The position numbers and the translations under genes are program-made. From sequence record OU509535.1: a stretch of 64,000 bases of DNA, one strand, 5' to 3'. This document shows, piece after piece, positions 1 through 64,000 of this stretch (position 1 is the stretch's first letter; every line of letters starts with the position of its first letter). The notes beneath the pieces were generated by a model. It did no database searches and was not told the origin of the DNA. It saw nothing but the letters and a program-made list of their open reading frames with translations.

Positions 1-1
1 T

Positions 2-766
2 TCATCTTCTAATGAATACAAAATTGGTAATACATATAACAAAGATAACAAAACTTGTGTTTTTCTTGGTGAATCACGATTTATTACTGAAAATGGCACT
101 ATCATCAATGAAGACGATGAAAATACCAACCAGGTACCAAATGGTATCAGAATCACATCAAAAAATGGTAATGTTTACCAGAAAAAAGATGGTCAGTGGT
201 TTAACATTGAAACCAAAAAAGCACTGAATAGTTCAGCGGCACAGGGTGCAGAACGTAGTGCACAAAAAATGATTCAAATTCATAATTCAAATGAAGATAA
301 CATAAAAATTGGTAGTACTGTTACTTCTAAATCAAACAAAACCTATACTTATCTTGGTGGTGATCGTTTTATGGATGCTGGTGGTAGATTATTACCAAAA
401 AGTACTGCTCAAGCTTTAATTCAAAAACACAAAGATGAAAAAAGTTCTGGGAAAGAAGAAGATGAACAAAAAACTGGTTCATCCGATGATACCAGTACTA
501 ATACCACTGACAACACCAATACCACTGATAATACAAATAGTTCAGATGATACTTCTGGTGGTAATGGTGATACAGATAATCAAAGTTCTGATAATCCAAT
601 GCAAGAACTTGCTGATAAAATTAATGCATCTCCATATGCACGTAAAATTAAAGTTCTATTAACTCGTGCTGATAAAGTATCTTTGTTAGCCGCTGATATT
701 TTTCTTAGTGGGAAACGAGAAGAAGTTACACAATTTATCAAATCATTAAATAATAATAATGAATAA
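2..766 (+). CDS. 5'-truncated hypothetical protein with three short repeated beta-rich modules and an S/T/D/N-rich linker
   Basis: The frame of track ORF 269..766 is open back to base 2 (SSSNEYKIGNTYNKDNK...), so the real start lies before the window. Confidence 0.75.
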   Translation, partial: SSSNEYKIGNTYNKDNKTCVFLGESRFITENGTIINEDDENTNQVPNGIRITSKNGNVYQKKDGQWFNIETKKALNSSAAQGAERSAQKMIQIHNSNEDNIKIGSTVTSKSNKTYTYLGGDRFMDAGGRLLPKSTAQALIQKHKDEKSSGKEEDEQKTGSSDDTSTNTTDNTNTTDNTNSSDDTSGGNGDTDNQSSDNPMQELADKINASPYARKIKVLLTRADKVSLLAADIFLSGKREEVTQFIKSLNNNNE

Positions 767-784
767 TTAAAAGGATTTATTGAA

Positions 785-1699
785 ATGTCTAAAAAAATTA
801 ACGAAGCACAAGTTAAGATTGATATCATGAACTTAAATAGTTCAGATCTATCAACACTTGCTCGAATGATGGAACTTGCTGGACAAGCCGAACAAGGTGC
901 AGTTCCAAGTACATATAGTTCTATTGGTGTACCAGGTAGTATTGCAGGTGCAGTCGATTCTATGGGTAATACTGAACCATCTGAAGTTGAAGTAGGTTAT
1001 GATGTTGATTCTGAACCAGATGTAAGTTCTTCTCTGGAAGTGGGTTCTGAGCCTGATGTTGATCCACTACAAAGTTCAATTGAAGAACTTGGCGGTATGA
1101 CTGATTTTGGTGCACAAGATGATGAACTAACTGATATCGACGTGGTAGAATCTGAAGAAATTGAAGACGAAGATGATATGATTGAAGAAGAGTTAAAACG
1201 TATGACTCAGTTATCTGGTATTGTCACTGAAGATGAAGATGTTGAAGTCGATTCCGATGATGATGATGACAAAGATGAATCAGATGATGATGTAGATCTC
1301 GATGAATCTCGCATTATTCCAGATCTAAGTCTAGAAGAAGATACCAGTGATGTTACTGAGTATGGTCCTTTTGATTCTGAACAAGATGCTATCCGTGATG
1401 CAAAATGGAAGACTAATGGAGAACTGGGTGATAACTTCAACGTAGATCAAAAAGAAGATGGTCATTTCTACTGGAGTCGTGTGATGCAAGAACAAGCGTT
1501 TAGTACTGAAGCAGATCCTGAATTAGTAGATACAGATGGTATTCAATATTCACGTCACCGTATGAAACCAAAATTTAATGGTGCTGCTCTCGGTGATAAC
1601 CCACTTCGTGAAGAAGAGCAAGAAGACGAAGAAACCGTTGATGATATCTTTGAAAGTCTACAAAAACGCTACACTGCTTTTGTTGGAGGTAAAAAATAA
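785..1699 (+). CDS. highly acidic hypothetical protein, possible internal head/prohead-core protein
   Basis: 304-aa ORF with AAGGA SD upstream. D/E-rich, with two RMxxL(A/S)G motifs and several hydrophobic-x-E sites. Confidence 0.8.
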   Translation: MSKKINEAQVKIDIMNLNSSDLSTLARMMELAGQAEQGAVPSTYSSIGVPGSIAGAVDSMGNTEPSEVEVGYDVDSEPDVSSSLEVGSEPDVDPLQSSIEELGGMTDFGAQDDELTDIDVVESEEIEDEDDMIEEELKRMTQLSGIVTEDEDVEVDSDDDDDKDESDDDVDLDESRIIPDLSLEEDTSDVTEYGPFDSEQDAIRDAKWKTNGELGDNFNVDQKEDGHFYWSRVMQEQAFSTEADPELVDTDGIQYSRHRMKPKFNGAALGDNPLREEEQEDEETVDDIFESLQKRYTAFVGGKK

Positions 1700-2103
1700 T
1701 GTTTGATTATCGTAAACTAATGGAAGCACTTGATGCTATTGAAAATGGTGAAGACGTGCAACAGGACAGTGCTCCAGCAGCGAAAGAGGATGTGGTGGGG
1801 CATCTCAAGGATATCACCAATTCAATTATCGACATTCTTGATAAACTACAAAGTGGTGATGCCGATATGAATGAGGTTTGTAAAGATTTGCAAAAAGCTA
1901 GTGACATTCTGTCAGCATTGGCATATAATGATTCTACTGATTCAGATGAAGAATCTGATACAACTGATGATACCAGTACTGATGAAGTAACAGAAGATGT
2001 TGGTGTCGATGGTTATGAACCAACAGTGGATAATCAAGAACACCGTTCTTATAAAGAGAAAAGTGCACCATCATATAGTTCTCGCCAAGGCTTTACTGGT
2101 TAA
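1699..2103 (+). CDS. acidic hypothetical protein, translationally coupled to upstream gene
   Basis: 134 aa; TAATG stop/start overlap and GGAGG SD. Confidence 0.8.
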   Translation: MFDYRKLMEALDAIENGEDVQQDSAPAAKEDVVGHLKDITNSIIDILDKLQSGDADMNEVCKDLQKASDILSALAYNDSTDSDEESDTTDDTSTDEVTEDVGVDGYEPTVDNQEHRSYKEKSAPSYSSRQGFTG

Positions 2104-2115
2104 GTGATATGATGT

Positions 2116-4099: not shown

Positions 4100-4123
4100 T
4101 AAAAAGTTGAAATAGTACTTTAC

Positions 4124-5909: not shown

Positions 5910-6552
5910 TGTAGTACGTCATAAAGGCGTGATGCGAAATACTGGTTCACGTGTGTTCGTTGTTTTTCGTGAACTACCAGGTGAACCAGAATATTGTCTG
6001 GTTGTATTTCAAGATTCTCTACCAGAAGTATATACTTGGGCCGTTCGTGATCTAGTTTCAGGCCCAGGGCAAAATAGTACTGAATTACATGAAATCATGA
6101 ATGCAGTTGGTGTTCTTGATGGTCGTAAAATGCTGAATGTATTACATGAAGGTAAGTACTTACGTAAAGTTCGTACTGCTGATGTGGATATGCATACTGG
6201 AGGAAATAACATTATTCCTCTTAATGTTCTTAATGAACGATTCAGTGCTAATCTTACCGAAGAATCAAAAATCAAAGATTACAACCCCTTTAATCCTGAA
6301 ATGCAGGATACCAAAATCGAGGAAATGACTATTGTTTCTGAACTGATCAAAGAAGCTCAGAAATATGAAAAACTTTCTAAAGATTACTACGAGCGTCTTT
6401 ATAACCTTGAACCTTCTATGCGTCCACAGGGTGAAGTTAAAGAAAGTGAAGGTTTCTTTAGTATAGAATTTCCTAACGATATTTCACAAACTAAAGCAAT
6501 TGAAAAACTGAAAAAAGTATTCTTGGAGCGTAAAAATAATGCCAACGATTAG
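5902..6552 (+). CDS. hypothetical protein
   Basis: 216-aa ORF coupled to its neighbours. Confidence 0.8.
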   Translation: MSNVVRHKGVMRNTGSRVFVVFRELPGEPEYCLVVFQDSLPEVYTWAVRDLVSGPGQNSTELHEIMNAVGVLDGRKMLNVLHEGKYLRKVRTADVDMHTGGNNIIPLNVLNERFSANLTEESKIKDYNPFNPEMQDTKIEEMTIVSELIKEAQKYEKLSKDYYERLYNLEPSMRPQGEVKESEGFFSIEFPNDISQTKAIEKLKKVFLERKNNAND

Positions 6553-6844
6553 TATAGAAGAAATTATTCTTATGCTAAAAGAAGAAAGGCAAAAACAAAT
6601 TCATAGTCCAAATACTTTAGGTGATACAAATAAAACAAAAAATGACTGGACTGCATTATGTGCTTACTATTTGTTTGAAGGAGCAAGTAGACCAGATAAA
6701 CATGTATCATTTGATGAATTCAGAACATCATTGATTAAAGCAGGTGCTGTTATTATTGCAGCACTTGAAACGAGTTTCGCTTTAGAAGATGAAAAACTAA
6801 AAGACTTGATGAATAAGCTTGAGAATAATCATGACGAAGAATGA
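6539..6844 (+). CDS. small all-alpha protein, possibly MazG-like NTP pyrophosphatase fold
   Basis: KEERQKQ...DW...FRTSLIKAGAVIIAALE resembles phage MazG-like families, but no clear EExxE motif. Confidence 0.4.
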   Translation: MPTISIEEIILMLKEERQKQIHSPNTLGDTNKTKNDWTALCAYYLFEGASRPDKHVSFDEFRTSLIKAGAVIIAALETSFALEDEKLKDLMNKLENNHDEE

Positions 6845-7421
6845 ACTTGATTCTTGGATCAGGTGTCAGACTAATACATTTTATAGTGGCGGAGCAGCAG
6901 GTGCTGACCGCCTTTTTACTTTATATGCAATTGAAAACGGTTTTGAATGTATCAATTTCTCTTTCAGTAAACATGTACATTATGTACCAGAAGAAACTGT
7001 ACTGAGAATACCAGCAGATATATTAGGTGACAATGAAATATATAATGAATTAGTTAGAGCATCCAGAAATTTATCGAAGAAAGTCCCACAAAAAAATACA
7101 TACGTATATAACTTATTAGCTCGCAATAGCTATCAAATATTCAATACTGAACGTATATATTGTATTTCTACTTTAGTTTCTCCTAATACAGTTAGTGGTG
7201 GTACATCATGGGCTGTACAAATGTTGATTAATAAAGAAGAACACCCAGAAATATATTTGTACGACTATTATGATAAATGCGTATATTCATACGATTCAGT
7301 ACTGAAACAATTCACTGAAGTATTTTTTGTTCCTACCCCTCATGGAAACTGGACTGGAATAGGATCAAGAAATGCAGAACCAAAACATTTAGAACATTTT
7401 AAAACATTTTTCAAGGATTAA
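6831..7421 (+). CDS. stand-alone SLOG-superfamily nucleotide-binding protein
   Basis: N-terminal SGGAAGAD loop, later SGGTSWAV and TGIGSR motifs. Start at ATG 6831. Confidence 0.7.
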   Translation: MTKNELDSWIRCQTNTFYSGGAAGADRLFTLYAIENGFECINFSFSKHVHYVPEETVLRIPADILGDNEIYNELVRASRNLSKKVPQKNTYVYNLLARNSYQIFNTERIYCISTLVSPNTVSGGTSWAVQMLINKEEHPEIYLYDYYDKCVYSYDSVLKQFTEVFFVPTPHGNWTGIGSRNAEPKHLEHFKTFFKD

Positions 7422-7423
7422 AA

Positions 7424-8353
7424 ATGAAACAACTATTAGACTTATATGACAAAATCTTGAAAGAAGGAGTACAAAGTACAGACCGAACTGGGGTTGGTAC
7501 TATTAAACTCGTAGGTCAACAAATGCGATTTGATCTAAATGAAGGCTTTCCAGCCGTAACAACTAAACGTCTTGCGTGGAAGGCGATGTTATCAGAACTA
7601 CTGTGGTTCATTGAAGGTTCCCATGATGAACGTCGTTTGTGTGAAATTCTTCATGGTACTCGTGACTGGAGTAAAAAAACAATCTGGACAGATAATTATC
7701 TCAAACAAGGTGTAGATCTTGGATATAGTGACGGTAATCTTGGTCCAGTATATGGTAAACAATGGAGAGATTGGGTAGATTATAAATTTAGTTCTGATCC
7801 AAATGAAATTCAATTATTAAAAGATAAAGGTTATAAAGTATTAGATTATACCGGCTCGCATGGTGTTGTAATGCGTCGCAGTACTGATCAACTCATGAAA
7901 GTTATTGATGGTCTAAAAAATGATCCATATGGACGCCGACATATTCTAAGTGCATGGAATGTTGGTGAGCTTGATGATATGGCTCTTCAACCATGTCATA
8001 GTTTTGTTCAATGGGTAGTTAGTGATAATAAACTAAGTTGTATTCTGACCCAACGCTCAGCAGATACATTCTTGGGAGTTCCACTGAATATCACATCATA
8101 TTCAGTACTCACCCATATGATAGCACAAATTACTGGATTAGAAGTTGGTGAATTTATCTGGAACGGTGGAGATTGTCATATTTACTTGAATCATATCGAA
8201 CAAGTAAAAGAACAATTATCACGAGATACAAAAGAATTACCAAAATTGTGGATAGACCCAACAGTTACAGATATTACAAAATTTACAATGGATTCTGTTA
8301 AATTGATTGGATATGATCCACATCCAGTAATCAAAGCACCAATGGCAGTATAA
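7424..8353 (+). CDS. thyA: thymidylate synthase ThyA
   Basis: DRTGVGT, ELLWFI, LGPVYGKQWR, catalytic LQPCH, QRSADTFLGVPLN, DCHIYLNH, IKAPMAV terminus. Confidence 0.98.
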   Translation: MKQLLDLYDKILKEGVQSTDRTGVGTIKLVGQQMRFDLNEGFPAVTTKRLAWKAMLSELLWFIEGSHDERRLCEILHGTRDWSKKTIWTDNYLKQGVDLGYSDGNLGPVYGKQWRDWVDYKFSSDPNEIQLLKDKGYKVLDYTGSHGVVMRRSTDQLMKVIDGLKNDPYGRRHILSAWNVGELDDMALQPCHSFVQWVVSDNKLSCILTQRSADTFLGVPLNITSYSVLTHMIAQITGLEVGEFIWNGGDCHIYLNHIEQVKEQLSRDTKELPKLWIDPTVTDITKFTMDSVKLIGYDPHPVIKAPMAV

Positions 8354-8356
8354 TAT

Positions 8357-8386
8357 AAAAGGGAGACATTAAGTCTCCCTTTTTTT
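8357..8386. terminator. bidirectional terminator between convergent genes
   Basis: AAAAGGGAGAC-ATTAA-GTCTCCCTTTT. Confidence 0.85.
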
Positions 8387-9917
8387 ATACACCAACAACA
8401 CAACGACCAATGAATCTCATATCAGGTTCCATTGGAACTTGTAGTTTTACTTTATCTAGTTCAATTGACATATTTTCTACTGCAACATTTTCATAAAACC
8501 CAGATGACATAAGTTCTTGTACTTGTACTGATTTTGGTTCATCTACTGTAATAACCAATTCATAATTAATACCATCACTGGAAGGTACCCATGAAGATAT
8601 ATCAGAAATGTCTATTGTTTGAGAACCACTAATACGTTTCCATTTACCATTAATTTTTTGAATTAATGTATTAAAACTAGGAGAAAAAGCTAACATACCA
8701 TTTTCACCTAAAGTATTATTAGATGCATCAATAAATGGTGGTCTAAACCCAATCTCAGTTAATTTGGTTTCCCCATTATAACCATCCACAGTCGGACTTT
8801 GTGGGAAAAATAAAATTTCTGTATTTTTCCAACGCTGCACTTCTTTTGATAAGGCCGTGGCCGAGAATTCACCAGTTACCGAACCCCTGTGATATAAACC
8901 AGTGCTACTATCAGACCATTTACTTGGGTCTATTCCGGGGTTTGTGGTTGGATCATATGGTTTGCTGTTAAATGTAATCGAAGGTTTATCGACGGTACCA
9001 TATGTTGCTGCAAAACGTCCTTCAGCTTCTGAAATACCATCATCATACATTGCATCTCCGGTTCTACGTAAACCATCTAAACCATATAAATCAAGTACAG
9101 ATTGTACATCGGAAACTGAAGTTGGGAATTGTCGTCCATATGAATTCACTAGTTTATTATCAAATGTAACACTAGTGGCTGCAATACGGGTAGCATACTG
9201 ACGAAGACTTTGCCATTTGGTACCAGTACTAATGATCCAGTCACTATCACGTAAGCCTGGGTCATAACTAGCATTACCAACCTCGAATTGTTCTGTTAGA
9301 TCTGGGTCTGATGTTAATGATATAAGACCTTCATGACCAGTAGTTGGGATTTGATCTACATTAAATCTTGCATAAGCAGAGGTAACTGATTTAGAACCAT
9401 TACCATCTGTGGTAAAATAATATTTAATTTCCAACCAGTCACCCTCACCTGATGGGTTGGTTGGTGTGAATATAACTGGTGATGTTGAAGGATTTGTAGT
9501 ACTCATGTGAGTAGTAGCTAGATCAACAATACCACGAGTTACGTAATAATCACCTGAATTGGTTGAGTCCGTTGGTGGTAGATTATCGTAAACCGAAATT
9601 TCTGATGGTGGATCTACATCATCGGTATTTGGATTAAAAGTACCTTTATATGTCATACCATTCAATAATGTATCTGGTAAATTTGCAATTGAAATTTTAC
9701 CATTAGCATCTAATTGAACAAAACGTCGATATTCTACTGTATCATCTAATAATTGTAATGTACCTTCAAAAGCTTCCCATTCACTATTATAACGAATCAT
9801 TCCCGGACGTTTAATGTCATTTGGTGGATTTTTCAATAGTGCTTTTGGTAATTCCAAGAAACCATTAGTACTATCGATAATAACACCAGAATCACCACGT
9901 ATTCTATATATACTCAT
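8385..9917 (-). CDS. putative virion structural (fibre/baseplate-associated) protein
   Basis: 510 aa, T/S/D/G-rich; N-terminal LELP...RPGMIRYN...FEG motif seen in phage fibre proteins; late-type promoter upstream. Confidence 0.6.
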   Translation of the reverse strand: MSIYRIRGDSGVIIDSTNGFLELPKALLKNPPNDIKRPGMIRYNSEWEAFEGTLQLLDDTVEYRRFVQLDANGKISIANLPDTLLNGMTYKGTFNPNTDDVDPPSEISVYDNLPPTDSTNSGDYYVTRGIVDLATTHMSTTNPSTSPVIFTPTNPSGEGDWLEIKYYFTTDGNGSKSVTSAYARFNVDQIPTTGHEGLISLTSDPDLTEQFEVGNASYDPGLRDSDWIISTGTKWQSLRQYATRIAATSVTFDNKLVNSYGRQFPTSVSDVQSVLDLYGLDGLRRTGDAMYDDGISEAEGRFAATYGTVDKPSITFNSKPYDPTTNPGIDPSKWSDSSTGLYHRGSVTGEFSATALSKEVQRWKNTEILFFPQSPTVDGYNGETKLTEIGFRPPFIDASNNTLGENGMLAFSPSFNTLIQKINGKWKRISGSQTIDISDISSWVPSSDGINYELVITVDEPKSVQVQELMSSGFYENVAVENMSIELDKVKLQVPMEPDMRFIGRCVVGV

Positions 9918-10440: not shown

Positions 10441-11556
10441 TTAGATATTGTCGCTAATAGGCAGAGTTGGTGCTTGCCATGATAGTGTACAAATAATTGT
10501 CATATTACCATATGAACTTAAATTAACTGATTCATTAAAAATACAAGAAATTATTTCGTATTTATCAGAAACAGTGTGATTTGTTTCATTGATTACATAT
10601 CTACTTTGCATTGATATATCAAAATAATCATAACCAGCAATAACAGTACCACCAATATCCTCATTTGCTTCCCCACTGAAACGAATTTTCATATCAGTTA
10701 CTGGTGGTTCATACCCCTGTGTTACATTTACTTCGATATTAGTGACAAGATATCCAGCAGGACAAGTACCAATAACCAGTACTGTATTAGTGTATGAATG
10801 ATCGATAGTGTTCACTATAACAACTATATCCTTACCGGCATCTCCTTTATCACCCTTCTCACCTTGCAAGCCTTCTTTACCACGAAATTCAATGCCAGTG
10901 CTCCATTCTTTTTGTACTGGATCTGTATTTTCCACAATATCTACATAATATAATTTACCATCACTTGTGTTATAGAAACAATAATCTTCTGGAAGATTAG
11001 TAATATCAGGGAAAGTGCTTCCGGTACTATCAATGTGGAATCTACCGCGTGGACCTACTTCACCCCTGAAGCTAATACCGCTCGACCACGTTTGAGTACT
11101 GGAATCATAAAAATAAAGTTTTCCATCATTGGTATTATAGAAAGTATAACCATCAAATAAACCAGAAGTAGGGAATACCGTACCAGAACTATCTATATGG
11201 AATGGTTTACCCTGTTCACCTTGCTCACCTTTTCCAAATTCAACCGAATTCCATGTACTTGACTTACCTGGATTTGAAGTTTTAAAATACAAAACACTTG
11301 TGGAATTTGCTAAGCTCAGATAGCTCCACCCAATAGTTTTATCTGTATTAAAATCACTGTCAGGTATTTCAAAACCAATTTCGTTTGGATAAAAATTACT
11401 TCCATCAGAACCGTCATGACCAACAACCAGACCTAAATCTTCAATGGTATTATCTGCATAAGTTACAATCAAATGACCATCTGTGCTGATTTTCATACTT
11501 TTAATACCAGAATTATTACATGAGCAATTGGACCCATTATTAAATGAAATTGTCAT
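10441..11556 (-). CDS. collagen-repeat fibre-like virion protein
   Basis: G-X-Y tracts (GEQGEQG, GEVGPRG, GKEGLQGEKGDKGDAG) separating repeated FHIDSxG...FYNTxDGKLY...W modules. Confidence 0.75.
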   Translation of the reverse strand: MTISFNNGSNCSCNNSGIKSMKISTDGHLIVTYADNTIEDLGLVVGHDGSDGSNFYPNEIGFEIPDSDFNTDKTIGWSYLSLANSTSVLYFKTSNPGKSSTWNSVEFGKGEQGEQGKPFHIDSSGTVFPTSGLFDGYTFYNTNDGKLYFYDSSTQTWSSGISFRGEVGPRGRFHIDSTGSTFPDITNLPEDYCFYNTSDGKLYYVDIVENTDPVQKEWSTGIEFRGKEGLQGEKGDKGDAGKDIVVIVNTIDHSYTNTVLVIGTCPAGYLVTNIEVNVTQGYEPPVTDMKIRFSGEANEDIGGTVIAGYDYFDISMQSRYVINETNHTVSDKYEIISCIFNESVNLSSYGNMTIICTLSWQAPTLPISDNI

Positions 11557-11588: not shown

Positions 11589-11639
11589 TATTTATCCAGT
11601 ACTATACTCTTTTGGTTAGTATATAAAGCACAATAAATA
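11589..11639. promoter_or_regulatory. divergent T4-late-like promoters
   Basis: GATAAATA on - (11589-11596) and AATAAATA on + (11632-11639) between divergent structural genes. Confidence 0.5.
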
Positions 11640-19703: not shown

Positions 19704-22700
19704 TTATATAACATTTAACAAGTTATTGAGTACCAAACCGTCAATTTTCAATGAATTAGCATACACACTTACATCAATTGGTTTGTAATAATTTTTATAA
19801 ACACTAAAATTAAGTTCAACACCAAGATTGATACCAGTGAATGTATATGTTTCACCTTTAGCAAAATAGTGTTCAGCACTATACATATCTGAACGAAGGA
19901 TATTGTTATTATTTCTCACATGAACTTTTTCATATCCAAGTACTATAATATCATCATAACTAGTACTACCAGTAATGATATTATCCTTAACACTATATGT
20001 ACCAACTGAAACTGGCTCCACCACATAAGTGGTATTTTCATTCTCAACTTTAGTAACACTGGTTACTGTACAAGTTGTATCACCGATATACACTTTATCT
20101 GTTAAATCATATGAGTAAGTCCATCTTACACCATCGAACACAGGTTTAATATCATCGACGTCATATTCATATACAGTAAACTCTAAACTTTCTGGAGTTC
20201 CAATACGAACCAGTTCATCTAATGTACCAACACCGGTATTTGGCATGAAATATCCACTATCAACCACACCATCAGAAGTTTCAACTAACTCATTAGAGAT
20301 TAGCCAAACATCCAAATCTAATGGATCTATTTCATCCGTGTAATCACCATTATTCAAAGAAATATCATAGAATACATCATAGTCCATAACATCAACTCTG
20401 TAATTTCTTATACTTTCATACAACAAATCACCATTGTTATTGAACTCATGGTCTGCAAAACTTCTAATACGAATAACATTTATACTTGTTTTTGTATAAG
20501 GTTCACCAGTATTATTAGTGGTTAAATTATTAAACTCAAGTTTATTTCCATTTGAATCAACCAAAGAATAAACTCCGTTATTAAGCTCAACTTCAAACAT
20601 AATAGGTCGATCATTCTCTTTGATTTTATCAGTACTGAGAATAAGTTCATGAGTAAAGTTCTGGTATCTGTAATAATCATCACCATCTGGGGTAAACACC
20701 ATAACTTTATCACCACTATTGAGATTACTATTTTTCATCAAGAATTCAGTACTGCTTATAATACTATCAATAGTACTGATATAATTATAAGAGTCTTTCT
20801 TAATTACTGTGCGGTTTACATAGTTTTGTACCAGACTATATGGAGGAATGCTCACAATAGCTTCTGTACGCTTGTATGGATTGAGAACAACAAAACCCTC
20901 TATCTGGAATCGACTAAAGTCTTTAATCTGCTGTAGAGATGTAGAATCGTTACTATAGCCATCTACTGTAAAACGCATTTGTGAAATAGCATTAGCACTT
21001 GGGTTCAACTCGGAAATATCAATGAAAACTGATTCAGTCAAATCACCTTCGTAGCTCAGTGCGACAGTTTTATATTGAGATTCCAAACCTAAATTATCAT
21101 AAGCATTCATATCATTATAATACTTCTGCCCCTTGATTCCCTCAAGTACAACCATGTAGTCACTGTACATTGGATTATTATCATCCATTTCCAGATCATC
21201 CATATCAATCTCAACTGCTGTAACTACTGAACCATCAGTAATGAAAAGATCTTCCATATATTCATCAATGCTACGATCATCAGGAATACTAACATAACTA
21301 CCGTTAATATTAAATCTAATATATTTTCTCGGGATCATTACAAATGCCTGAATATCCATTGATTTACGATTACTATTCAGAATATCCTCTGCATATGCAT
21401 AAGGATCATCACTGTCTTTATCAAACGTGTTACGAATAGCAGTTAGTACATGAATAGCATCTTTGTAATAACGACCCTGAGAATCAATATCATATTTGAA
21501 ACAATAGATACCGTATTCAATTTCCATTACGCTTCTGATGGTTTCTTCATCAGCATCTGGTGTTTCTTCCAAAATAAGTTCTCTATAATGGGCGAATAAA
21601 TCCTCACTAATTTCAAAATATCCCATGTTAAAGTCAGAACTTGAACTAAAACCAAAAGGCAATCTCGTATTCGGATTATCATTGTAAATTTCACCACTCA
21701 GACCACAACCAATGGTATCATGGATTACATCTGAACTCATTGAACTATAAAGTTTTAATCTATTACTCAATGTATTATATTGTGAATACATTCTAACATC
21801 TTGTGTTAAGTTAGAAGTACTATACAATTCAGAAGTGATTCTGTCTAAATCAGAAGTGAAACTTTCAGTTCTTTCAGCATCATCAACGTTCAATTTATAC
21901 CATGCATTGATAGCATCAACTAAATCCAGACTTGTATCAAAATCAGAATATAGTTCAAACATATCAACAGAAATCTGAGTATAAATTTCATCTACCTCAA
22001 CAACTGGTAGTGTATACTTGAAACGCTGGATTTCATAGTACTGTACATTATCATCAGAATTACTTACATACTTAGCATTGTTCTCTTCCAGACTTGTAAC
22101 ATCATATAAATCACTATCAGGCTGGCATTGAACATTATCAAATTGCATTGAGATATCAATTTCCTGGAATTTTCTATCTGGGTAAACGAAGTCGTTTGGT
22201 ATTGAACCAACTACCACCCATTGTCCAGTACTTTCATTATATTCAGCATATTCATAATCCCAAATATCAGATTGTGTTTTAACCCAAATTGTACCGTTAT
22301 ATTCATAACCATTTGGATCTAAATCATTACAAACACCATAAACATAATCAGTGTCGGATGTTTTCTGTTCAATTTGAGAACGAATTTTAGTCCTGTACGG
22401 TTTAACTTCATTGAAATATTCAATAATCTGATTAATCAATTCGTCATTAGTGTAATTTTGTTTAAGTGATTGTTCTAACCCAACAATATAAATGTATGAA
22501 GTTTTGAATACCCAATCAACCACACCCTGTTCAACGTGTACATATTTAACCATGTCAAATACAATATTACTTTGAGCTAAATCGAATGAATTTTTGATTA
22601 AATCTAATGCACTTCTTACATTAATTTCCTTGTTGCTTAAAGAACCATCACTGTTATAAACTTCATACCCATCATATAAAGATGAATTAAGAGCAATTGT

Positions 22701-29672: not shown

Positions 29673-29722
29673 GTTTAGCTCCATAAATTCTTTCTTATAT
29701 CATATGTTTTTATTTATTACAT

Positions 29723-34357: not shown

Positions 34358-34384
34358 ATTTTTACCTCTTTTACTTAAATTTAC

Positions 34385-34413
34385 TTGACTTTGTATTTAT
34401 ATTAGAGTATATT
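34385..34413 (+). promoter_or_regulatory. sigma70-type promoter for the two-gene island
   Basis: TTGACT-N17-TATATT. Confidence 0.55.
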
Positions 34414-34467
34414 TGTGTAGTAAAAATATTTGAATACTAAAAGTTGTTAATTATTTAAGGTGTTTAA

Positions 34468-43201: not shown

Positions 43202-44219
43202 TAAAGCGATAACATTCACTGATATTCATTTCGGAATGAAGAATAACAGTAAACAACACAATGAAGATTGTGTTAATTTTGTCAAATTCATGATTGAAGA
43301 AGCAAAAAAGAACGAAATAAGAGTTGCTATTTTTATGGGTGACTATTTTCACAACAGAAGTAATATTAATATTCAAACACTTAATTACGGTCTTGAAGTT
43401 CTTCAGATGCTTAATGATAATTTTGATAAAGTTTACTTTCTTGTTGGCAATCATGATATGTATCACAAAAATAAACGAGATATAACCAGCATTAATATGG
43501 CTAAAGTATACAATAATATTGTATTCATTAATGAAATTACAACAATTAAAGATTGTACTTTTATACCGTTTATGATTGATGATGAATATAAACAATTACC
43601 ACATATTAAATCCAAATATGTTTTTGGGCATCTTGAATTGCCTGGATATTTGTTGAATAAAATGGTAGAAATGCCTGATTGTGGAAAAGAGAATGAAGAT
43701 TCTTTTAGTTCATGTGAATATGTTTTTAGTGGACACTTTCATAAACGTCAGGCTAAATTAACCAGACATGGTACTAAAATTGTATACACTGGAAACTGTT
43801 TCCCTCATAACTTTTCTGATACATGGGATGATGCTCGTGGTGTTATGATTCTTGAACACGGAAAAGAGCCACAATTTAAAGCATGGGAACATGCACCTAA
43901 ATACAGAACATTCACCTTATCCGAATTTTTGTCTAACCCACAGTATTACGCTCAAGATGATACTATCAACAAAGTGTTAATTGATGTTAATATCAGTACT
44001 GATGAAATTAGTTTCATTCGTGAAATATTCAGTTCTCAATATAATATCAGAGAATTTAATGCTGTTGCTAATAAACAAAATATAAAAGAATTACTTGAAT
44101 CTGAACAGGAATTCGAAAATACAGAATCAGTCGATGAAATTGTAATTCAACAAATTATGGAACTTGATAGTACAATGTTCGATAAATCACTACTTATACA
44201 AATATATAATTCTTTATAA
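43179..44219 (+). CDS. gp47: gp47/Mre11-like recombination nuclease subunit
   Basis: Phosphoesterase motifs TDIH, GDYFH, GNHD, GHL and SGHFH; start at ATG 43179. Confidence 0.93.
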   Translation: MKTDILFDKAITFTDIHFGMKNNSKQHNEDCVNFVKFMIEEAKKNEIRVAIFMGDYFHNRSNINIQTLNYGLEVLQMLNDNFDKVYFLVGNHDMYHKNKRDITSINMAKVYNNIVFINEITTIKDCTFIPFMIDDEYKQLPHIKSKYVFGHLELPGYLLNKMVEMPDCGKENEDSFSSCEYVFSGHFHKRQAKLTRHGTKIVYTGNCFPHNFSDTWDDARGVMILEHGKEPQFKAWEHAPKYRTFTLSEFLSNPQYYAQDDTINKVLIDVNISTDEISFIREIFSSQYNIREFNAVANKQNIKELLESEQEFENTESVDEIVIQQIMELDSTMFDKSLLIQIYNSL

Positions 44220-44228
44220 GGAAATAAA

Positions 44229-46373
44229 GTGTTAACATTTAAACGTATTACTATGCGAAATTTTTTCTCCTTTGGTAATGCACCACAAACAATTGATCTA
44301 GATAGTTCAGATATTACACTTGTTCTTGGTCAAAATAATGATGCAGTTATTGAAGGAAATGATAGTTCAGGAAGAAGAAATGGTGTTGGTAAATCCGCTA
44401 TTATTCAGGGAATTGTTTTTGGTTTGTACGGAAAAAGTATTGCAAATGAAATTAAAATTCCCAATTTAGTGAATAAAATAAACGGAAAGAACTGTGAAGT
44501 AAAAATTGAATTTGAAAAAGATGGAATTTCTTATATTGTAGAACGTGGGCGTAATCCTGCGTTTTTTAATTTCATCAAACTCAGTGATGATCAAATAAAT
44601 GACGAAAGTCGTGGTGAAAAGAAAGATACACAAGAAGATTTAAATGAAATTTTGGGTATTTCACAATTTCTGTTTGAACACATTGTAGTACTGAATGCTA
44701 ATGTCGAACCTTTTCTTTCTATGTCTGCACAAAAACAACGTGATATGATCGAAGAACTTCTCGGTATTACACAATTAACCGAAAAAGCACAGCTTCTTAA
44801 AGATATGCAAAAGGAAACTAAGCGTTTAGCAGAGCAAGAACGTTTTAAAAATGAAACTATACAAGCAAGTAATGAACGAATTCAAAAAAGTATAGAAACT
44901 CTTCAGGAACAGGCAAATAAATTCGAAATTGACAAGTCAAACCGAATCAGTGAACTAGAAAAACAGATTGAAACCTATTCTGTTCTAAATTTCGAAGAAC
45001 TATATGAACAAGCCAATATAAAAGAAGAATCATTAATTCATAATGCTAAGAAATCCAATTTAGAAAATCGCGTATCTGATTTAGTACTTAAATATGAATC
45101 GTATAAACGAGATATTGAACATAATAAAGCAATACTAAAGATTAATATCGAACGCCTTCAACAAGTTGACATTGTAAGTGAATTAAAGAATCATGAAGAA
45201 CTTGAATTGTGGAAACAACTTGAATCTATACTAAAAGAGAACATAACACAAAAGAATTATAAAGAACAAAAAATAAATTTATTAAAAAGTACGTTACAAA
45301 GTTCTAAATCTTCTCTTGAATTGGAAAAAAACAAACTAGATGTGGTACTGAATAGCAAATGCCCACTGTGTAAATCAAGTCTAGAGCATAATGAGCATAG
45401 TTCTGATATTAAATCAAAAATTCTGAAAACGATTACTGATATTGAGAACTCTATATTAAGTACTGAATATGATATTAGTATACTTTATGAAGAAGTTGAT
45501 TCAATTGACGTGTTTGATATGCCCCCTAAGCCTGAAACTGTGTATAATACACTGACTGAAGCACAAATGCATGAGCATAAGTTACAGGAGTTAATTAAAC
45601 AGTACGAAATTGATCAAATCAATATTTTTGAATCAGAATTAATGTCATCATATGAAGAATTAAATTCTTTTGAACTAAAAGATGTACCAGATGCACTAAC
45701 CAAGACTGAAGTTCGTGAACTGGAACTTGCTTATGATTCATTAAAACAACAATTACAACGAGAATTTAGTACAGTAAACACATATATTAGTCAAATTAAC
45801 ACACTTCAGAATGAATCCATTGTCGTGGTTAATTATGACTCTTATAATGAACTGGATAAGCTACAAAATCATCAAGATTTTATGGTTAAACTTCTTCTCA
45901 ATAAAGATTCATACTTGAGAAAACGTATCATCGAACAAAATATTTCATTTTTAAACAACAGACTTCAGTACTATATTGATATGTGTGGTTCAGAGCACAA
46001 TGTTAAGTTCTTGACTGATTTGAGTGTTGAAATTGAAAAGAATGACCAGTACTTTGACTATAAACAGCTTAGTCGCGGTGAACGTACTCGTGTTAATATC
46101 GCACTGTCTTGTGCCTTCAGGGATACATATGAATCATTATATCAAAATATCAATTTAATTTGTTGTGATGAGGCATTAGAAACTGGCTTGGATGCTAGTG
46201 GTGTATTGAGAGCATGGATGATATTTCAGGACATGGCATCAATCAGAAATAAAAATGTCTTTGTTATTTCACACAGAGATGAACTTATTTCAAAAACCGA
46301 AAATATCATGAAAGTTACTAAAGAGGATGGATTCAGTACTGTTCAGTACTGTACATTAGACGATATATATTAA
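44229..46373 (+). CDS. gp46: gp46/Rad50-like SMC ATPase subunit
   Basis: GTG start, NGVGKS P-loop, coiled coil with CPLC hook, LSRGE signature, CCDE Walker B, ISH. Confidence 0.93.
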   Translation: MLTFKRITMRNFFSFGNAPQTIDLDSSDITLVLGQNNDAVIEGNDSSGRRNGVGKSAIIQGIVFGLYGKSIANEIKIPNLVNKINGKNCEVKIEFEKDGISYIVERGRNPAFFNFIKLSDDQINDESRGEKKDTQEDLNEILGISQFLFEHIVVLNANVEPFLSMSAQKQRDMIEELLGITQLTEKAQLLKDMQKETKRLAEQERFKNETIQASNERIQKSIETLQEQANKFEIDKSNRISELEKQIETYSVLNFEELYEQANIKEESLIHNAKKSNLENRVSDLVLKYESYKRDIEHNKAILKINIERLQQVDIVSELKNHEELELWKQLESILKENITQKNYKEQKINLLKSTLQSSKSSLELEKNKLDVVLNSKCPLCKSSLEHNEHSSDIKSKILKTITDIENSILSTEYDISILYEEVDSIDVFDMPPKPETVYNTLTEAQMHEHKLQELIKQYEIDQINIFESELMSSYEELNSFELKDVPDALTKTEVRELELAYDSLKQQLQREFSTVNTYISQINTLQNESIVVVNYDSYNELDKLQNHQDFMVKLLLNKDSYLRKRIIEQNISFLNNRLQYYIDMCGSEHNVKFLTDLSVEIEKNDQYFDYKQLSRGERTRVNIALSCAFRDTYESLYQNINLICCDEALETGLDASGVLRAWMIFQDMASIRNKNVFVISHRDELISKTENIMKVTKEDGFSTVQYCTLDDIY

Positions 46374-46403
46374 AAAAGGGGAGCATATTAGCTCCCCTTT
46401 TTT
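46372..46403. terminator. bidirectional terminator
   Basis: A6-GGGGAGC-ATATTA-GCTCCCC-T6. Confidence 0.85.
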
Positions 46404-47419
46404 ATTATTGTCATAATTTCATTCAAAGATGTAGGTGATACGGTTTCGGTCCACCCATCACCGAATAATTCTTTTGTTAAGTGTCTTGCTTTTATGGTTC
46501 TTTTTATTTCTTTTTCTATGTTAAATGCATCATTACAATTTTCATATACTTTGTGGTATACAACATTCAATTTGTACTTACATTTATTTTTATATGAACC
46601 CATTCTGTGTTTGATATTCTTTGTTATACCGAATTTATAACCAACTATATTATTATAATCATCAGATACTTCTAAAATGTATATACCTGAACTAAAATCA
46701 GAAGATTTATAACCATTTTTGTAACTAACAGAATTACACAAAGGACACCCTTTATCTCGCATAAAATTGTCATATGTCATAGACCATGTATAATTGCATT
46801 TACAAGTTAAAATGACTTTACTAAAAACACCATTAAAGTTCTTTTCATCTATTAATTCAAATTTAATGCCAGTTTCTTTGCTTTTAATTTTTAAATTCTC
46901 ATTTAATTCATTTATACTGTATTTGTGAGTACCTGAACATTTCAAACAACCAATATTATTACTGAAAAATGAGTCATAAGTGGTAGTATTCCATTCGTAT
47001 GCTTCAGAATGTTTAGTATTGTCATTGCATTTTAGTTTTAAATATGTTTTTGTTTTATTATATTCATCAAAACCGAGGAATTCCAGTGTCCCACCTCGTT
47101 TAATGCATTCATTTTCCACATTTTGAATTAAAATTTCAGGTGTTAACTTATTCAATGAAGGCTTTCTGAACTTTTTTGATTCTATATTTCTCAGATATCT
47201 ATATAATTTGTTAATTCTGTAATTATTATAAGTTATATTATCATGTGTTATTGAAGTAAGTGTATTATTACCTAACCATTTTTCTTCAATAATGAATCCA
47301 TTGAATTTTATATTAAATTTGGATAACCTTTTCGATAAATCGTTGAAATATTCCAATGGAGTTCTGGAATTATAGTTAATGTGAACTAAAATAATATCAT
47401 CTGGTAAAGATATTATCAT
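46388..47419 (-). CDS. zinc-finger-repeat protein with C-terminal GIY-YIG-like domain (putative homing endonuclease)
   Basis: C..CxxC modules; C-terminal GIYIL...YKFGIT...R...E...GWTE. Confidence 0.75.
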   Translation of the reverse strand: MIISLPDDIILVHINYNSRTPLEYFNDLSKRLSKFNIKFNGFIIEEKWLGNNTLTSITHDNITYNNYRINKLYRYLRNIESKKFRKPSLNKLTPEILIQNVENECIKRGGTLEFLGFDEYNKTKTYLKLKCNDNTKHSEAYEWNTTTYDSFFSNNIGCLKCSGTHKYSINELNENLKIKSKETGIKFELIDEKNFNGVFSKVILTCKCNYTWSMTYDNFMRDKGCPLCNSVSYKNGYKSSDFSSGIYILEVSDDYNNIVGYKFGITKNIKHRMGSYKNKCKYKLNVVYHKVYENCNDAFNIEKEIKRTIKARHLTKELFGDGWTETVSPTSLNEIMTIIKKGS

Positions 47420-47910: not shown

Positions 47911-48035
47911 GATATAATCTCTAATATTATATATCTAATAAATTTATTTACTTCAATAAATACCTATGTAAATAATCTTTCTGTATAATGCATAATTCAA
48001 TACATAATTTCTTGATACGTTGGGTACAGAATAAC

Positions 48036-48073
48036 AAAATAGGTCAGTACTGAAAAGTACTGACCTATTTTTT
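48036..48073. terminator. 16-bp-stem bidirectional terminator built from two AGTACT sites
   Basis: AAAATAGGTCAGTACT-GAAA-AGTACTGACCTATTTT. Confidence 0.85.
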
Positions 48074-48080
48074 TCTGATT

Positions 48081-48296
48081 TTATCGCCCCTCATTTTGTT
48101 TACGGACTTTCTTGTTGTATGCTTTAACCATCAAGTCTCGTTCAGTTACTGGCATATTAAGTAACATTTCATACGAGGTATTATCAATATATACAGCAGC
48201 TTCCATTAATGCTTGTTTAATTTCTTGCTGATTAAACTCTATGTCTCGTATGTATTTTTCTATTTCAGTTGCCTCTAACTGGAGAAGCTGAGATCG
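48081..48296 (-). CDS. gp51-like segment not in the ORF track; likely C-terminal extension of the gp26-like protein by -1 frameshift
   Basis: The -1 frame reads RSQLLQLEATEIEKYIRDIEFNQQEIKQALMEAAVYIDNTSYEMLLNMPVTERDLMVKAYNKKVRKQNEGR*. Its first ATG is only at 48206 and has no evident SD. Confidence 0.65.
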   Translation of the reverse strand, partial: RSQLLQLEATEIEKYIRDIEFNQQEIKQALMEAAVYIDNTSYEMLLNMPVTERDLMVKAYNKKVRKQNEGR

Positions 48297-56059: not shown

Positions 56060-56097
56060 TATTTTTAACGCATATTTTAACCACCTTTTTCAGTACT

Positions 56098-56105
56098 GAT
56101 AAATA
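56098..56105 (+). promoter_or_regulatory. late promoter of the major capsid gene
   Basis: GATAAATA about 50 nt upstream of the ATG, directly preceded by AGTACT. Confidence 0.55.
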
Positions 56106-61762: not shown

Positions 61763-62056
61763 ATGGCTAAACATGAAGACAAAGTACAAATTGAAGATCT
61801 AAATAATGAACAACGCAAACGTCTTAGTGACGGTCTGAACAATGCAGTAGTTCAACTTACTTTTATTGATGATACCAAAGCCTCACTGAAAGATTTTATT
61901 GATTCACTGGCTGACGAACTCGGTATCGATGCGAGTGATATCAAACAAGCCGCTAATACTATCTATAAACAAAACTTCTTCGATAAATCCAGTAAGCATG
62001 ATAAAATCGAAACTATTCTAAGTATTACTGGTAATCTTCCACAAGCCGACGATTAA
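61763..62056 (+). CDS. T4 DsbA-like dsDNA-binding protein
   Basis: 97-aa helical protein; LKDFI...ADELGID...IYKQNF pattern resembles T4 DsbA; lies beside the polymerase. Confidence 0.6.
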   Translation: MAKHEDKVQIEDLNNEQRKRLSDGLNNAVVQLTFIDDTKASLKDFIDSLADELGIDASDIKQAANTIYKQNFFDKSSKHDKIETILSITGNLPQADD

Positions 62057-62068
62057 TACATTATAAAT

Positions 62069-62095
62069 AAAAGCCTCCTTTTCTGGAGGCTTTTT
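62069..62095 (+). terminator. intrinsic terminator
   Basis: AAAAGCCTCC-TTTTCT-GGAGGCTTTTT. Confidence 0.8.
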
Positions 62096-62131
62096 CTATC
62101 TGTTAAGTGCAATTAAAAATAAGGAAATTTA

Positions 62132-64000
62132 ATGTATATTGATGCATATATGGAACGAAAACGTAGTGGTGATGTGTTGCACGTAGTAGAACGAAAAAAT
62201 GGAAAGCGTATTCTACGAGAATTACAACCACTATATGAGTATTATGTAGAAAATGTTAATGGTAATCACAAAACCATTTATGGTACTAAAGCAGAAAAAC
62301 TGGAATTCGATACTGCATCTGAACTAAAACGAAGTATAGAAAAAAATGTAGCAAATGGAATCAGAACATTTGAAGGTAAATTCAATGTTGTATTCAAAAC
62401 ACTTGCTCAATATTATATGGGTACTGAATCACCAGATTTAAACATTGTATTCTTCGATATAGAAACTGATTTTCATAAGAAATTTGGTTATGCATCTCCA
62501 TCTAATCCCTTTAATCGTGTAACAGCCATTTCATTATATCAGTCATGGACAGGTAAAGATTATGTACTTACCCTTGCTCCAGAAGATATGACAACAACAG
62601 AAGCACAGGATATTGTCAATAAACTAAATGCGGAAACTAATGATCCAAATTCAAGTGTAATTCTTTATACTGATGAAAAGGAAATGTTCATGGATTTCTT
62701 TAGTCTAATTGATGATAGTGATGTATTATCTGGATGGAATAGTGAATTTTTTGATATTCCTTACATGATTAACAGAACCAAAATTATCTTCAATGAAGCC
62801 ATGACTGCTCGTTGGTGTTTATGGAATAAAAAACCAATTGCACGTGAAGCGGATAACTTTGGTAAATTGGTACAGACATATGATTTGGTTGGTCGAGTTC
62901 ATCTTGATTATCTTGCTCTTTATAAGAAACACGCCGCTCAGGTAGAGCAATCGTATAAACTTGATTATATCGCAGAAAAAATCACAAAAGAAAATAAAGT
63001 ACAGTACGAAGGATCTCTGGATAAATTATATAGAGAAGATTATATGACTTTCCTTCGATATTCTAAACAGGATAGTATTCTTCTCAAAAAAATCGATTCT
63101 ATTCTTGACTATATTAGTCTGCATAACCGACTGGCACATAAAGAATGTGTTCTCATCAAAACTACTATGGGTTCAGTAGCACTGATTGACACTTCAATTA
63201 TCAATCTAGCACACAAACGTGGTGAAGTAGTATTTGATAAAAAAGAAGAGGTTGAAATTGATCCAGAACTTGAGTACTATGATGGATACGATGATGATGA
63301 AGACAATAATGATTCAAAACTCAGTGCAAAAGCAGCAGGTGCATGGGTACAAGATCCAATATTAGGATTAGTTGAATACTTAGGTTGTACTGACTTTAAC
63401 TCACTTTACCCAACTGTACTTCGAACTCTAGGAATGAGTACTGAATGTATTCTTGGGCAAATTAGACAAGATTATACAGAAAAATACTTAGAAGAACGTA
63501 TATCTGAACAAAAAGCAAAGTCTAAATCAAAATCATTTGAACCGGAGTGGACAGCAGCATGGCATGGTTTATTCGCCGCTGTGGAGTTTACGATGGTACA
63601 TGAAAGAAGTGAAAAACTACTGACTATTGATTTAGAAGATGGCAGTTCTTTCCAGGCAACTGGTTCACAGTTATATGATATTATATTCAGTCCAGAAAGT
63701 ACTATTGTACTTAGTGCAAATGGAACACTATTTGATAAATCAAAATATGGTGTTATTCCAGATATCCTAACGCAATGGTATTCTGAGCGTAAAGCCCAGC
63801 AAAAAATGGTAATTGATTATAAACATATGGCTTCAGATGGTTGGGAAATCCCATCACCTGATATTGTTCAAAATATGTTTTCACAATTCAGTACTAAATC
63901 ATACTATAAAACAAACCTTCATGAAGAAGATCCAGTATATCTTCTACGTAAAGCTATAGGTGATAATAATCTTGAAGAAATTGCTCGTATTATTGTAGAA
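62132..64000 (+). CDS. gp43: family B DNA polymerase (gp43-like), 3'-truncated by the window end
   Basis: Hand translation from ATG 62132: ExoI FFDIET, ExoII SGWNSEFFDIPY, SYKLDYIA, polymerase region II DFNSLYP. Absent from the ORF track because there is no stop in the window. Confidence 0.95.
   Translation, partial: MYIDAYMERKRSGDVLHVVERKNGKRILRELQPLYEYYVENVNGNHKTIYGTKAEKLEFDTASELKRSIEKNVANGIRTFEGKFNVVFKTLAQYYMGTESPDLNIVFFDIETDFHKKFGYASPSNPFNRVTAISLYQSWTGKDYVLTLAPEDMTTTEAQDIVNKLNAETNDPNSSVILYTDEKEMFMDFFSLIDDSDVLSGWNSEFFDIPYMINRTKIIFNEAMTARWCLWNKKPIAREADNFGKLVQTYDLVGRVHLDYLALYKKHAAQVEQSYKLDYIAEKITKENKVQYEGSLDKLYREDYMTFLRYSKQDSILLKKIDSILDYISLHNRLAHKECVLIKTTMGSVALIDTSIINLAHKRGEVVFDKKEEVEIDPELEYYDGYDDDEDNNDSKLSAKAAGAWVQDPILGLVEYLGCTDFNSLYPTVLRTLGMSTECILGQIRQDYTEKYLEERISEQKAKSKSKSFEPEWTAAWHGLFAAVEFTMVHERSEKLLTIDLEDGSSFQATGSQLYDIIFSPESTIVLSANGTLFDKSKYGVIPDILTQWYSERKAQQKMVIDYKHMASDGWEIPSPDIVQNMFSQFSTKSYYKTNLHEEDPVYLLRKAIGDNNLEEIARIIVE

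Follow-up and report, generated by a model that had tools for sequence, protein, structure and literature searches.

A clade-wide excess of the palindrome AGTACT in RaK2-like jumbo phages points to possible sequence-based marking of phage DNA

Few palindromes are known to be over-represented, and the nearest parallel to the one described here is cyanobacterial HIP1 (GCGATCGC), which overlaps known methylation sites and has been unexplained for decades. Other short words are in excess as the outcome of identified biased processes, such as very short patch (VSP) repair, which depends on Vsr plus Dcm and skews CCWGG-related words in Escherichia coli, or uptake bias, which acts through an uptake receptor and spreads the DNA uptake sequences and uptake signal sequences (DUS/USS). 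HIP1 is a short perfect palindrome in many-fold, clade-wide excess that occurs inside genes in all frames as well as between genes, is not explained by codon usage and has no assigned function (PMC5861425). Here the palindrome AGTACT was analyzed in a stretch of 64,000 nucleotides (nt), the whole of which is referred to as the window and is identical (100%) to positions 186001-250000 of OU509535.1, a Klebsiella pneumoniae phage; the window is of the RaK2/K64-1 jumbo phage type, genus Alcyoneusvirus. A preliminary description, based on the letters of the window, had reported an excess of AGTACT and proposed a HIP1-like system in which a phage methyltransferase or a DNA-binding protein marks, organizes or recombines the genome at this word. 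The window shared 99.2-99.5% identity with the Klebsiella jumbo phages KP13-7, Muenster, RCIP0023, K64-1 and RaK2 and ~73% identity with the Escherichia phages 121Q and PBECO4, has a GC content of 33.8% and carries T4-like genes (baseplate, gp55-like sigma factor, gp46/47, EndoVII, portal and major capsid). The sequences sampled for comparison comprised 261 kb of RaK2-type sequence, loci of 42-50 kb each from the clade and from outgroups, and 50 kb of E. coli K-12 as a host sample.

AGTACT was found 119 times in the window, with a mean spacing of 539 bp, as compared with 21.9 copies expected from base composition and 16.5, 32.9 and 60 copies under Markov models of order 1, 2 and 3, respectively. 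The earlier count of about 105 against about 22 was therefore too low, and the excess it reported is real and stronger than claimed. The comparison with Markov models proposed at that time gave an observed value near the expectation only at maximal order (AGTAC/GTACT/GTAC), where 111 copies were predicted because the sub-words are themselves enriched. Specifically, GTAC was found 435 times against 200 expected and RGTACY 212 times against 50 (4.2x), with YGTACR at expectation (49 against 50, 1.0x). Among the 6-bp palindromes of the window AGTACT ranked first in enrichment by far, followed by GGTACC at 2.8x, and the top enriched 8-mer was CAGTACTG with 29 copies (0.6 expected from composition, 2.9 from an order-2 Markov model), 11 of which extend to TCAGTACTGA. 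AGTACT is its own reverse complement and, with its favored flanks, is palindromic out to 8 bp. In a logo of the 119 sites the flanks were symmetric, with C at -1 in 55 and G at +6 in 60 of the sites and a weak T/A preference at -2/+7, G at -1 being disfavored; information beyond -2/+7 was ~0, and a dispersed repeat element of the repetitive extragenic palindrome or miniature inverted-repeat transposable element (REP/MITE-like) kind was rejected on that ground. The same symmetric flank preference (C at -1 and G at +6 favored, G at -1 at 0.06-0.09 against 0.17) was found in RaK2, 121Q, Kaldavass and XaC1, which argues for one conserved dimeric reader. The one-step neighbors AGCACT, AGTGCT, GGTACT and AGTACC were also enriched, by 2-4x.

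The excess is a property of double-stranded DNA and not of codons, peptides or RNA. When synonymous codons were shuffled within genes, 109 AGTACT were observed in coding sequences against 39.6 ± 5.5 (z = 12.6), so that the loss of the excess under synonymous shuffling, set beforehand as a test, did not occur; the corresponding values for CAGTACTG were 27 and 2.4, and the AGTACT excess also survived shuffles of codon order. With a corrected gene list, which places 112 of the 119 sites inside genes, shuffles by phase gave 75 sites against 29.7 for AGT-ACT, 12 against 2.2 for xAG-TAC-T and 25 against 8.5 for xxA-GTA-CT. The phases called earlier for the sites at 401 (AGT-ACT, Ser-Thr), 3229 (A-GTA-CT, Val-Leu) and 3552 (AG-TAC-T) were correct when the starts of the open reading frames (ORFs) were checked. 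The noncoding DNA of the window (3.2 kb) contained seven AGTACT against 0.86 expected, with a maximum of five in 2000 shuffles. At the protein level, the AGTACT pressure inflates the count of Ser-Thr dipeptides, which reached 1.15-1.93x expectation across the clade (window, 1.40x; RaK2 early region, up to 1.93x), with Thr-Ser at ~1.0. AGT-ACT spelled 45-72% of the Ser-Thr dipeptides of the clade against 15-21% predicted by codon usage, corresponding to log odds of 1.4-2.6 for this choice; in the outgroup phage PA5oct it was used in 1 of 82.

The AGTACT-rich clade, one of T4-related jumbo phages, covered Alcyoneusvirus (RaK2/K64-1), Asteriusvirus (121Q), Mimasvirus (GAP32/CBB/Kaldavass), Eneladusvirus, 7t3-like phages, Hallingskeid and XaC1. 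The loci of RaK2, 121Q, GAP32, fHe-Yen9-04, CBB, 7t3, XaC1, Kaldavass and Hallingskeid contained 67-126 copies per 42-50 kb (99 in 42 kb for Kaldavass and 112 in 42 kb for Hallingskeid), with ~14-17 expected. Outside the clade, AGTACT was found once in PA5oct (14 expected), whose portal protein is 43% identical, and 0, 3 and 4 times in XacN1, Atu_ph07 and T4 (~10, ~13 and ~17 expected, respectively), with 8 copies and no enrichment in Vibrio 2.275.O and 3 copies (11.6 expected) in E. coli K-12. The depletion in PA5oct, XacN1, Atu_ph07 and T4 agrees with the background given in the preliminary description, that phages usually avoid palindromes; avoidance of AGTACT is the normal state, which the RaK2-like clade has reversed. 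Within RaK2-type sequence, ~590 copies were found in the 261 kb sampled (~2.3 per kb, or one per ~450 bases), which extrapolates to ~800 per genome. Density was 1.9 per kb in the window, which holds late genes, as compared with 2.3-2.5 per kb in the regions of replication and early genes.

The same genomes have lost GCGC. This word was absent from the window (52 expected), from the 261 kb of RaK2-type sequence and from every AGTACT-rich locus sampled (28-52 expected per locus), whereas 26-342 copies were present in PA5oct, XacN1, Atu_ph07, Vibrio 2.275.O, T4 and E. coli, with 342 against 215 expected per 50 kb in E. coli K-12. The GCGC-free relatives infect Klebsiella, Escherichia, Cronobacter, Yersinia, Pectobacterium, Salmonella, Erwinia and Xanthomonas, and a loss shared by phages of hosts this diverse hints at a cause within the phages themselves, such as a nuclease of theirs that attacks host DNA. 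An origin of GTAC by double deamination of methylated GCGC was rejected because the GCGC deficit (~52) cannot cover the GTAC excess (~235) and, by reasoning, because the second deamination would no longer be methyl-directed.

The density of AGTACT was constant across lineages while its positions were not. Codon alignments of 23 orthologs from the window and 121Q (69% nucleotide identity) contained 70 and 68 copies, respectively, of which only 19 were at common positions (27% against a hexamer background of 16%), and four-fold sites were nearly saturated (0.489 identical against 0.431 at saturation). Ser-Thr dipeptides conserved in both were written as AGTACT in 16 of 29 cases in the window and 21 of 29 in 121Q, and jointly in 13 against 11.6 expected if independent. 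The dipeptide itself was poorly conserved between the two (26% against 48% for all dipeptides), so that new sites come up where the protein tolerates them. In four genomes of 98-99% identity, 14 of 94 AGTACT columns were polymorphic (14.9%, against 17.6% for all hexamers), and no purifying selection on AGTACT sites was detectable among these four close strains. When polarized by the minority allele, the changes comprised eight apparent losses, four gains and two ambiguous cases, too few to tell from balance. Since density stays constant while sites turn over at near-saturated synonymous divergence, the excess is a maintained statistical equilibrium under weak continuous pressure per site and not a set of conserved positions.

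In common with HIP1, the excess of AGTACT withstood codon and Markov models, extended over all frames and intergenic DNA, and was clade-wide yet poor in relatives. The two differ in magnitude (15-300x for HIP1; 5-8x for the AGTACT hexamer and ~45-80x for the octamer), in the carrier, which for AGTACT is a lytic phage genome and not a chromosome, and in the methylation of HIP1 sites, for which no counterpart was reported at AGTACT in two clade members. Furthermore, HIP1 sites are positionally conserved (PMC5861425; Xu et al. 2018) and AGTACT sites turn over. Similar to DUS/USS and the CCWGG words skewed by VSP repair, AGTACT copies are in excess and turn over, as expected from a biased process; however, the processes behind those words are identified, and for AGTACT no methylation was found in the two clade members with published methylomes and neighbor words are not depleted. 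Nick-associated motifs of phages (WACTRTGAC in Pseudomonas phages tf/Rembedalsseter, and those of T5) are likewise clade-conserved words enriched irrespective of similarity (PMC11780129), but they lack symmetry, lie on one strand only and number about a dozen copies, whereas AGTACT is palindromic and present in hundreds. Restriction-site avoidance is strong in the same genomes, with GCGC at zero and 23-30 of the 64 six-base palindromes missing in clade members. ScaI-type enzymes exist, and AGTACT nevertheless goes the opposite way, being avoided by the outgroups and enriched in the clade. Some palindrome absences were lineage-specific and look like ordinary avoidance of host restriction: the Klebsiella phage alone lacked CTTAAG (22 expected) and Kaldavass alone GATATC, and GGTACC, present 16 times in the window, was absent in 121Q, XaC1 and Kaldavass.

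The reading to which we give the most weight, at a probability of roughly 40%, is that the AGTACT copies are many interchangeable recognition sites for a putative clade-specific dimeric DNA protein. Two-fold symmetry extending over 8 bp, near-cognates enriched in a graded manner, the flank rule and the sharp phylogenetic onset together argue for such a reader, which would be a two-fold symmetric DNA-binding or DNA-processing protein acquired on the clade stem. It would recognize a core of RGTACY with G just outside disfavored and CAGTACTG as the best form. Each copy would make a small contribution to some function exerted genome-wide on the DNA of the phage, with replication, recombination, compaction or protection as candidate processes. 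In this working model AGTACT resembles Chi (GCTGGTGG; RecBCD/AddAB), a scattered excess word that marks "own" DNA with a small benefit per copy; unlike AGTACT, which is palindromic and without orientation, Chi is asymmetric, strand-biased and read from one side, and we know of no cognate helicase-nuclease for AGTACT. A DNA-binding protein that marks or organizes the genome at AGTACT, given as an alternative in the preliminary description, is thus the leading idea, although a putative one. Because GCGC is purged in the clade yet very common in hosts, and AGTACT is rare in hosts, both words could serve together for a sequence-based telling of unmodified phage DNA from host DNA, in which GCGC would be a "foreign" word, attacked for instance by a nuclease of the phage, and AGTACT a "self" word acting as a landing or protection site. 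That such a two-word code was fixed on the clade stem of RaK2-like phages, which have neither hypermodified bases nor a phage nucleus, and that it reshapes the proteome, appears unlikely as a whole.

Several observations weigh against a recognition function. When methyltransferase-like, nuclease-like and early-region ORFs were scanned against Pfam, no reader candidate emerged, the matches being limited to Dam, C5-methylase, Mom, CapR/treble-clef homing-endonuclease-like, PD-(D/E)XK and sigma-70 families. The co-occurrence of AGTACT excess and GCGC absence has a single evolutionary origin and is one observation; for these two reasons the functional part is inference, and wholly so for self/non-self discrimination. 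Individual sites are barely constrained, either among close strains (14 of 94 against 17.6%) or across genera (27% against 16%), and by the criterion applied to HIP1 (PMC5861425) this pattern also fits continual replenishment by biased repair.

Such neutral replenishment ("molecular drive"), by which a clade-specific, sequence-specific repair, nicking or gene-conversion activity, which may be that of the dimeric reader itself, would turn near-cognates into AGTACT during T4-like recombination without benefit to the phage, is somewhat unlikely in our estimation. It would account for the turnover of sites, their background level of short-term polymorphism and the equal equilibrium density across lineages, as well as for an excess that is highest where constraint is weakest (~8x in noncoding DNA and 2.5 sites per kb in early small ORFs). 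The lower number of sites in exchangeable depolymerase genes and their absence from a homing-endonuclease-like gene also fit, and, besides a full recombination set, the phages have several homing-endonuclease-like proteins with a CapR domain. A process of this kind should drain the one-step neighbors, which are instead 2-4x enriched, and it would have to overcome protein-level selection to make extra Ser-Thr. Selection for recognition sites was favored over drive because the pressure overrides protein composition, because no Vsr-like mismatch nuclease or cognate methylation, and hence no methylation/mismatch-repair pair, is known for AGTACT, and because the total loss of the host-frequent GCGC looks like a functional self/non-self device.

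The link to a methyltransferase made in the HIP1-like proposal was not supported, whereas its genome-wide, DNA-level excess stands beyond coding in the shuffles. That AGTACT is the target of a phage methyltransferase or another base modifier (e.g. Mom-like), with enrichment tied to modification, seems quite improbable, even though the search for methyltransferases suggested earlier did recover two such enzymes in RaK2, one of the Dam family (PF05869) and a small one of the C5 type (PF00145), and RaK2 also encodes a Mom-like protein. The Mu Mom consensus, S-A-S-N-Y, is unlike CAGTA, which counts against a Mom-type modification, and the C5 family is widespread outside the clade, homologues of the small RaK2 enzyme occurring in the clade but also in rV5-like phages, ICP1 and many other phages. 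RaK2 DNA was reported to be resistant to many restriction enzymes (PMC3622015); however, in Kaldavass and Hallingskeid, both AGTACT-rich, a nanopore comparison of native and amplified DNA gave GATC, CCWGG and TGCAT as the only methylated motifs (PMC11780129), this being literature evidence from two clade members and not from the phage of the window itself. Published methyltransferase counts moreover vary from 2 to 4 within the clade (PMC3622015, PMC11780129, PMC5259590), whereas the enrichment is uniform. A hijack of the host nucleoid-occlusion factor SlmA, which phage DNA would activate or titrate so as to block cell division, is largely refuted and very improbable. The SlmA box of E. coli (GTGAGTACTCAC) is a palindrome read by a dimer and has AGTACT as its center (PMC3020112), and one perfect box of the degenerate consensus (GTAAGTACTTAC), the only one in 64 kb, lies at 6152-6163 inside a gene. 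SlmA, however, depends on a 12-bp box each half of which reads G1, T2, purine 3, A4, G5, the first three being required (PMC3020112), and the phage flanks are anti-consensus, preferring C and avoiding G at position 3; near-matches with up to two flank mismatches numbered 21 against 49 expected in five loci, and the AGTACT excess was highest in a Xanthomonas phage. Host gyrase sites were also rejected, the published motif being ~130 bp long, degenerate and without a fixed hexamer. Finally, it is hardly credible that the excess is a by-product of coding (codons, codon pairs, dipeptides or phage tRNAs), of an RNA motif or of the avoidance of other palindromes. The AGT-ACT phase does hold 75 of the 112 coding sites, AGT and ACT rank among the favored codons and a large number of other palindromes are missing, but codon, dipeptide and tRNA causes were ruled out by the synonymous and codon-order shuffles together with the enrichment of the two other phases and of noncoding DNA, and a perfect 8-bp palindrome with symmetric flanks speaks against both coding and RNA. 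Compensation for avoided palindromes was rejected because the order-3 Markov expectation of 60 is only half of the observed count and no such effect is seen in PA5oct, which has one site despite similar GC content and ACT usage (AGT 0.20 against 0.36).

Full-text literature searches returned no prior report of AGTACT excess or GCGC absence in RaK2-like phages, and the RaK2 and CBB genome papers mention neither. The pattern suggests that phage DNA may be marked by sequence in a way not described before, and would be a second case, independent of HIP1. It is by far the more tractable of the two in experiments, as its carriers are lytic phages that grow on E. coli K-12 and other laboratory hosts, the sharp phylogenetic on/off boundary suits gene-content comparison, and virion proteomes and methylomes of clade members are already published. 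It is worth noting that a DNA word can measurably bend the protein composition of a virus. If the link to GCGC were causal, it would show how large unmodified phage genomes are told from host DNA and would bear on host-DNA degradation, anti-defense strategies and the engineering of jumbo phages. The combination of AGTACT-rich, GCGC-free and AT-rich sequence also provides a simple classifier of the clade for metagenomes.

The positions of the AGTACT sites of the window and of the features that contain them are listed in Table 1. Over the stretches of 40-64 kb analyzed, local spacing was near Poisson and slightly even (coefficient of variation 0.84; variance/mean per 2 kb 0.54, with 0.8-1.5 in relatives), and clustering or regular spacing was rejected accordingly. 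The list of intergenic sites given earlier held for 11598, 33268, 33400 and 56092 and not for 35932, which lies inside a 58-amino acid (aa) ORF (RaK2 ORF077w). A single 3327-aa ORF (19704-29684, minus strand), a virion structural protein in relatives, contained 27 AGTACT sites.

Table 1. Positions of AGTACT sites and associated features in the 64,000-nt window.
Feature	Position(s)	Strand	Context
AGTACT sites 1-30	314, 401, 494, 1502, 1975, 3229, 3552, 4114, 5099, 5242, 6076, 6155, 7298, 7880, 8104, 9225, 9498, 9867, 10225, 10778, 11095, 11598, 11826, 12343, 12397, 12535, 13349, 13838, 14199, 16277		
AGTACT sites 31-60	16343, 17090, 17539, 18283, 18514, 19068, 19107, 19939, 19962, 20631, 20748, 20772, 21816, 22037, 22227, 22901, 23016, 23109, 24001, 24033, 24249, 24536, 24876, 25188, 25712, 26688, 27030, 27414, 27897, 28245		
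AGTACT sites 61-90	28317, 28428, 28572, 29092, 29818, 30400, 30922, 31249, 31414, 32665, 33079, 33268, 33400, 34520, 34775, 35932, 37696, 38341, 39627, 40417, 41031, 41061, 42713, 43995, 44687, 45083, 45459, 45967, 46048, 46335		
AGTACT sites 91-119	46345, 48046, 48056, 48978, 49089, 50666, 51402, 51911, 52362, 52722, 52947, 54227, 54323, 54477, 55124, 55237, 55867, 56092, 57004, 57625, 58174, 59915, 60493, 60898, 61463, 63273, 63437, 63698, 63890		
CAGTACTG starts (29; span 1974-60904)	1974, 7297, 7879, 10777, 16342, 17089, 18513, 20630, 20747, 22900, 24000, 24032, 24535, 26687, 28244, 29091, 31248, 35931, 38340, 42712, 43994, 46334, 46344, 48045, 54476, 56091, 58173, 60492, 60897		
Intergenic AGTACT (7)	4114, 11598, 33268, 33400, 48046, 48056, 56092		
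Intergenic site	4114-4119		terminator hairpin just downstream
AGTACTGG-ATAAATA	11589-11603	-	upstream of gene 10441-11556
Two intergenic sites (33268, 33400)	33268-33405		leader of baseplate-wedge gene (29752-33216, -)
Tandem TTCAGTACTG TTCAGTACTG	46332-46351	+	3' end of gp46-like (Rad50-type) gene
Hairpin, perfect 16-bp stem, AGTACT in both arms	48036-48071		between EndoVII and baseplate-hub genes
CAGTACTG abutting ATAAATA box	56091-56105	+	upstream of major capsid gene (start 56155)

ATAAATA is the late-promoter consensus of the RaK2-like clade (PMC5259590). The sightings of AGTACT beside such boxes (56092; 11598 on the minus strand) are real, but they concern only 2 of the 16 ATAAATA late-promoter-like boxes of the window, and no evidence was found for the suggested role in recombination or at late promoters; a late-promoter element was rejected on this count and because 112 of the 119 sites are intragenic. 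Two further features of the preliminary description were recovered as claimed: the tandem pair at 46335/46345, and the presence of AGTACT in both arms of a terminator (48046/48056), which was confirmed by sequence and by folding. The hairpin had a dG of -23.1 kcal/mol (z = -6.9, with 0 of 200 shuffles folding equally well) and is flanked by a T run on the plus strand and by TTTTGTTATT on the minus strand; judged from these sequence features, it is an intrinsic-terminator-like element.

Next to the tandem pair, with its 3' end towards it, lies a homing-endonuclease-like gene (46388-47419, minus strand), which is placed between gp46 and EndoVII and has no AGTACT inside. RaK2-type phages carry several paralogous "endonuclease" genes (e.g. 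at 8257-9405 of one sampled RaK2 locus and at 254-1078 and 7226-8251 of another). A CapR-homology DNA-binding domain was found in all three endonucleases scanned (ORF115, ORF488 and ORF499), with a treble-clef zinc finger (homing-endonuclease-like) in ORF115 and ORF499 as well; the gene in the window is tied to these three only by the common annotation RB49ORF239c. The exchangeable capsule-depolymerase/tail-fiber genes of RaK2 (ORF525-529) contained 0.65 AGTACT per kb, ~4-fold below the remainder of the genome, which is consistent with slower uptake of the word by exchangeable host-range modules. This region (23764-34605 of the second of these two RaK2 loci) is already AT-rich and GCGC-free.

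The thymidylate synthase gene of the window (7424-8353) is uninterrupted, as in RaK2. In the sampled loci of two other Klebsiella phages it spans 6799-8352 and 6395-8352: in RCIP0023 the gene is split by an intron with an "intron-associated endonuclease", and in KP13-7 it is annotated as ~600 bp longer.

In relatives the gap between the EndoVII and baseplate-hub genes is ~0.8 kb long (43502-44337 of the 121Q locus), unannotated and without an ORF of more than 45 aa. The 121Q gap is conserved at the nucleotide level, with 75% identity to XaC1 over 212 nt (E = 2e-29) and 78% to Kaldavass over 181 nt, and is better conserved than many coding regions. The counterpart in the window (47911-48274) consists of 364 unrelated bases, which include the AGTACT-armed hairpin. 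A search of Rfam gave no match for the window and one sub-threshold, chance-level match for the 121Q gap; the 121Q-type gap may be a new RNA or replication element.

The Chi octamer GCTGGTGG was present in the window at 377, 4955 and 18271, in all cases on the plus strand (0.15 expected) with none on the minus strand. The Chi-related words CTGGTGGT and TGCTGGTG were also enriched, and the excess of the octamer may reflect runs of Gly, Leu and Val codons.

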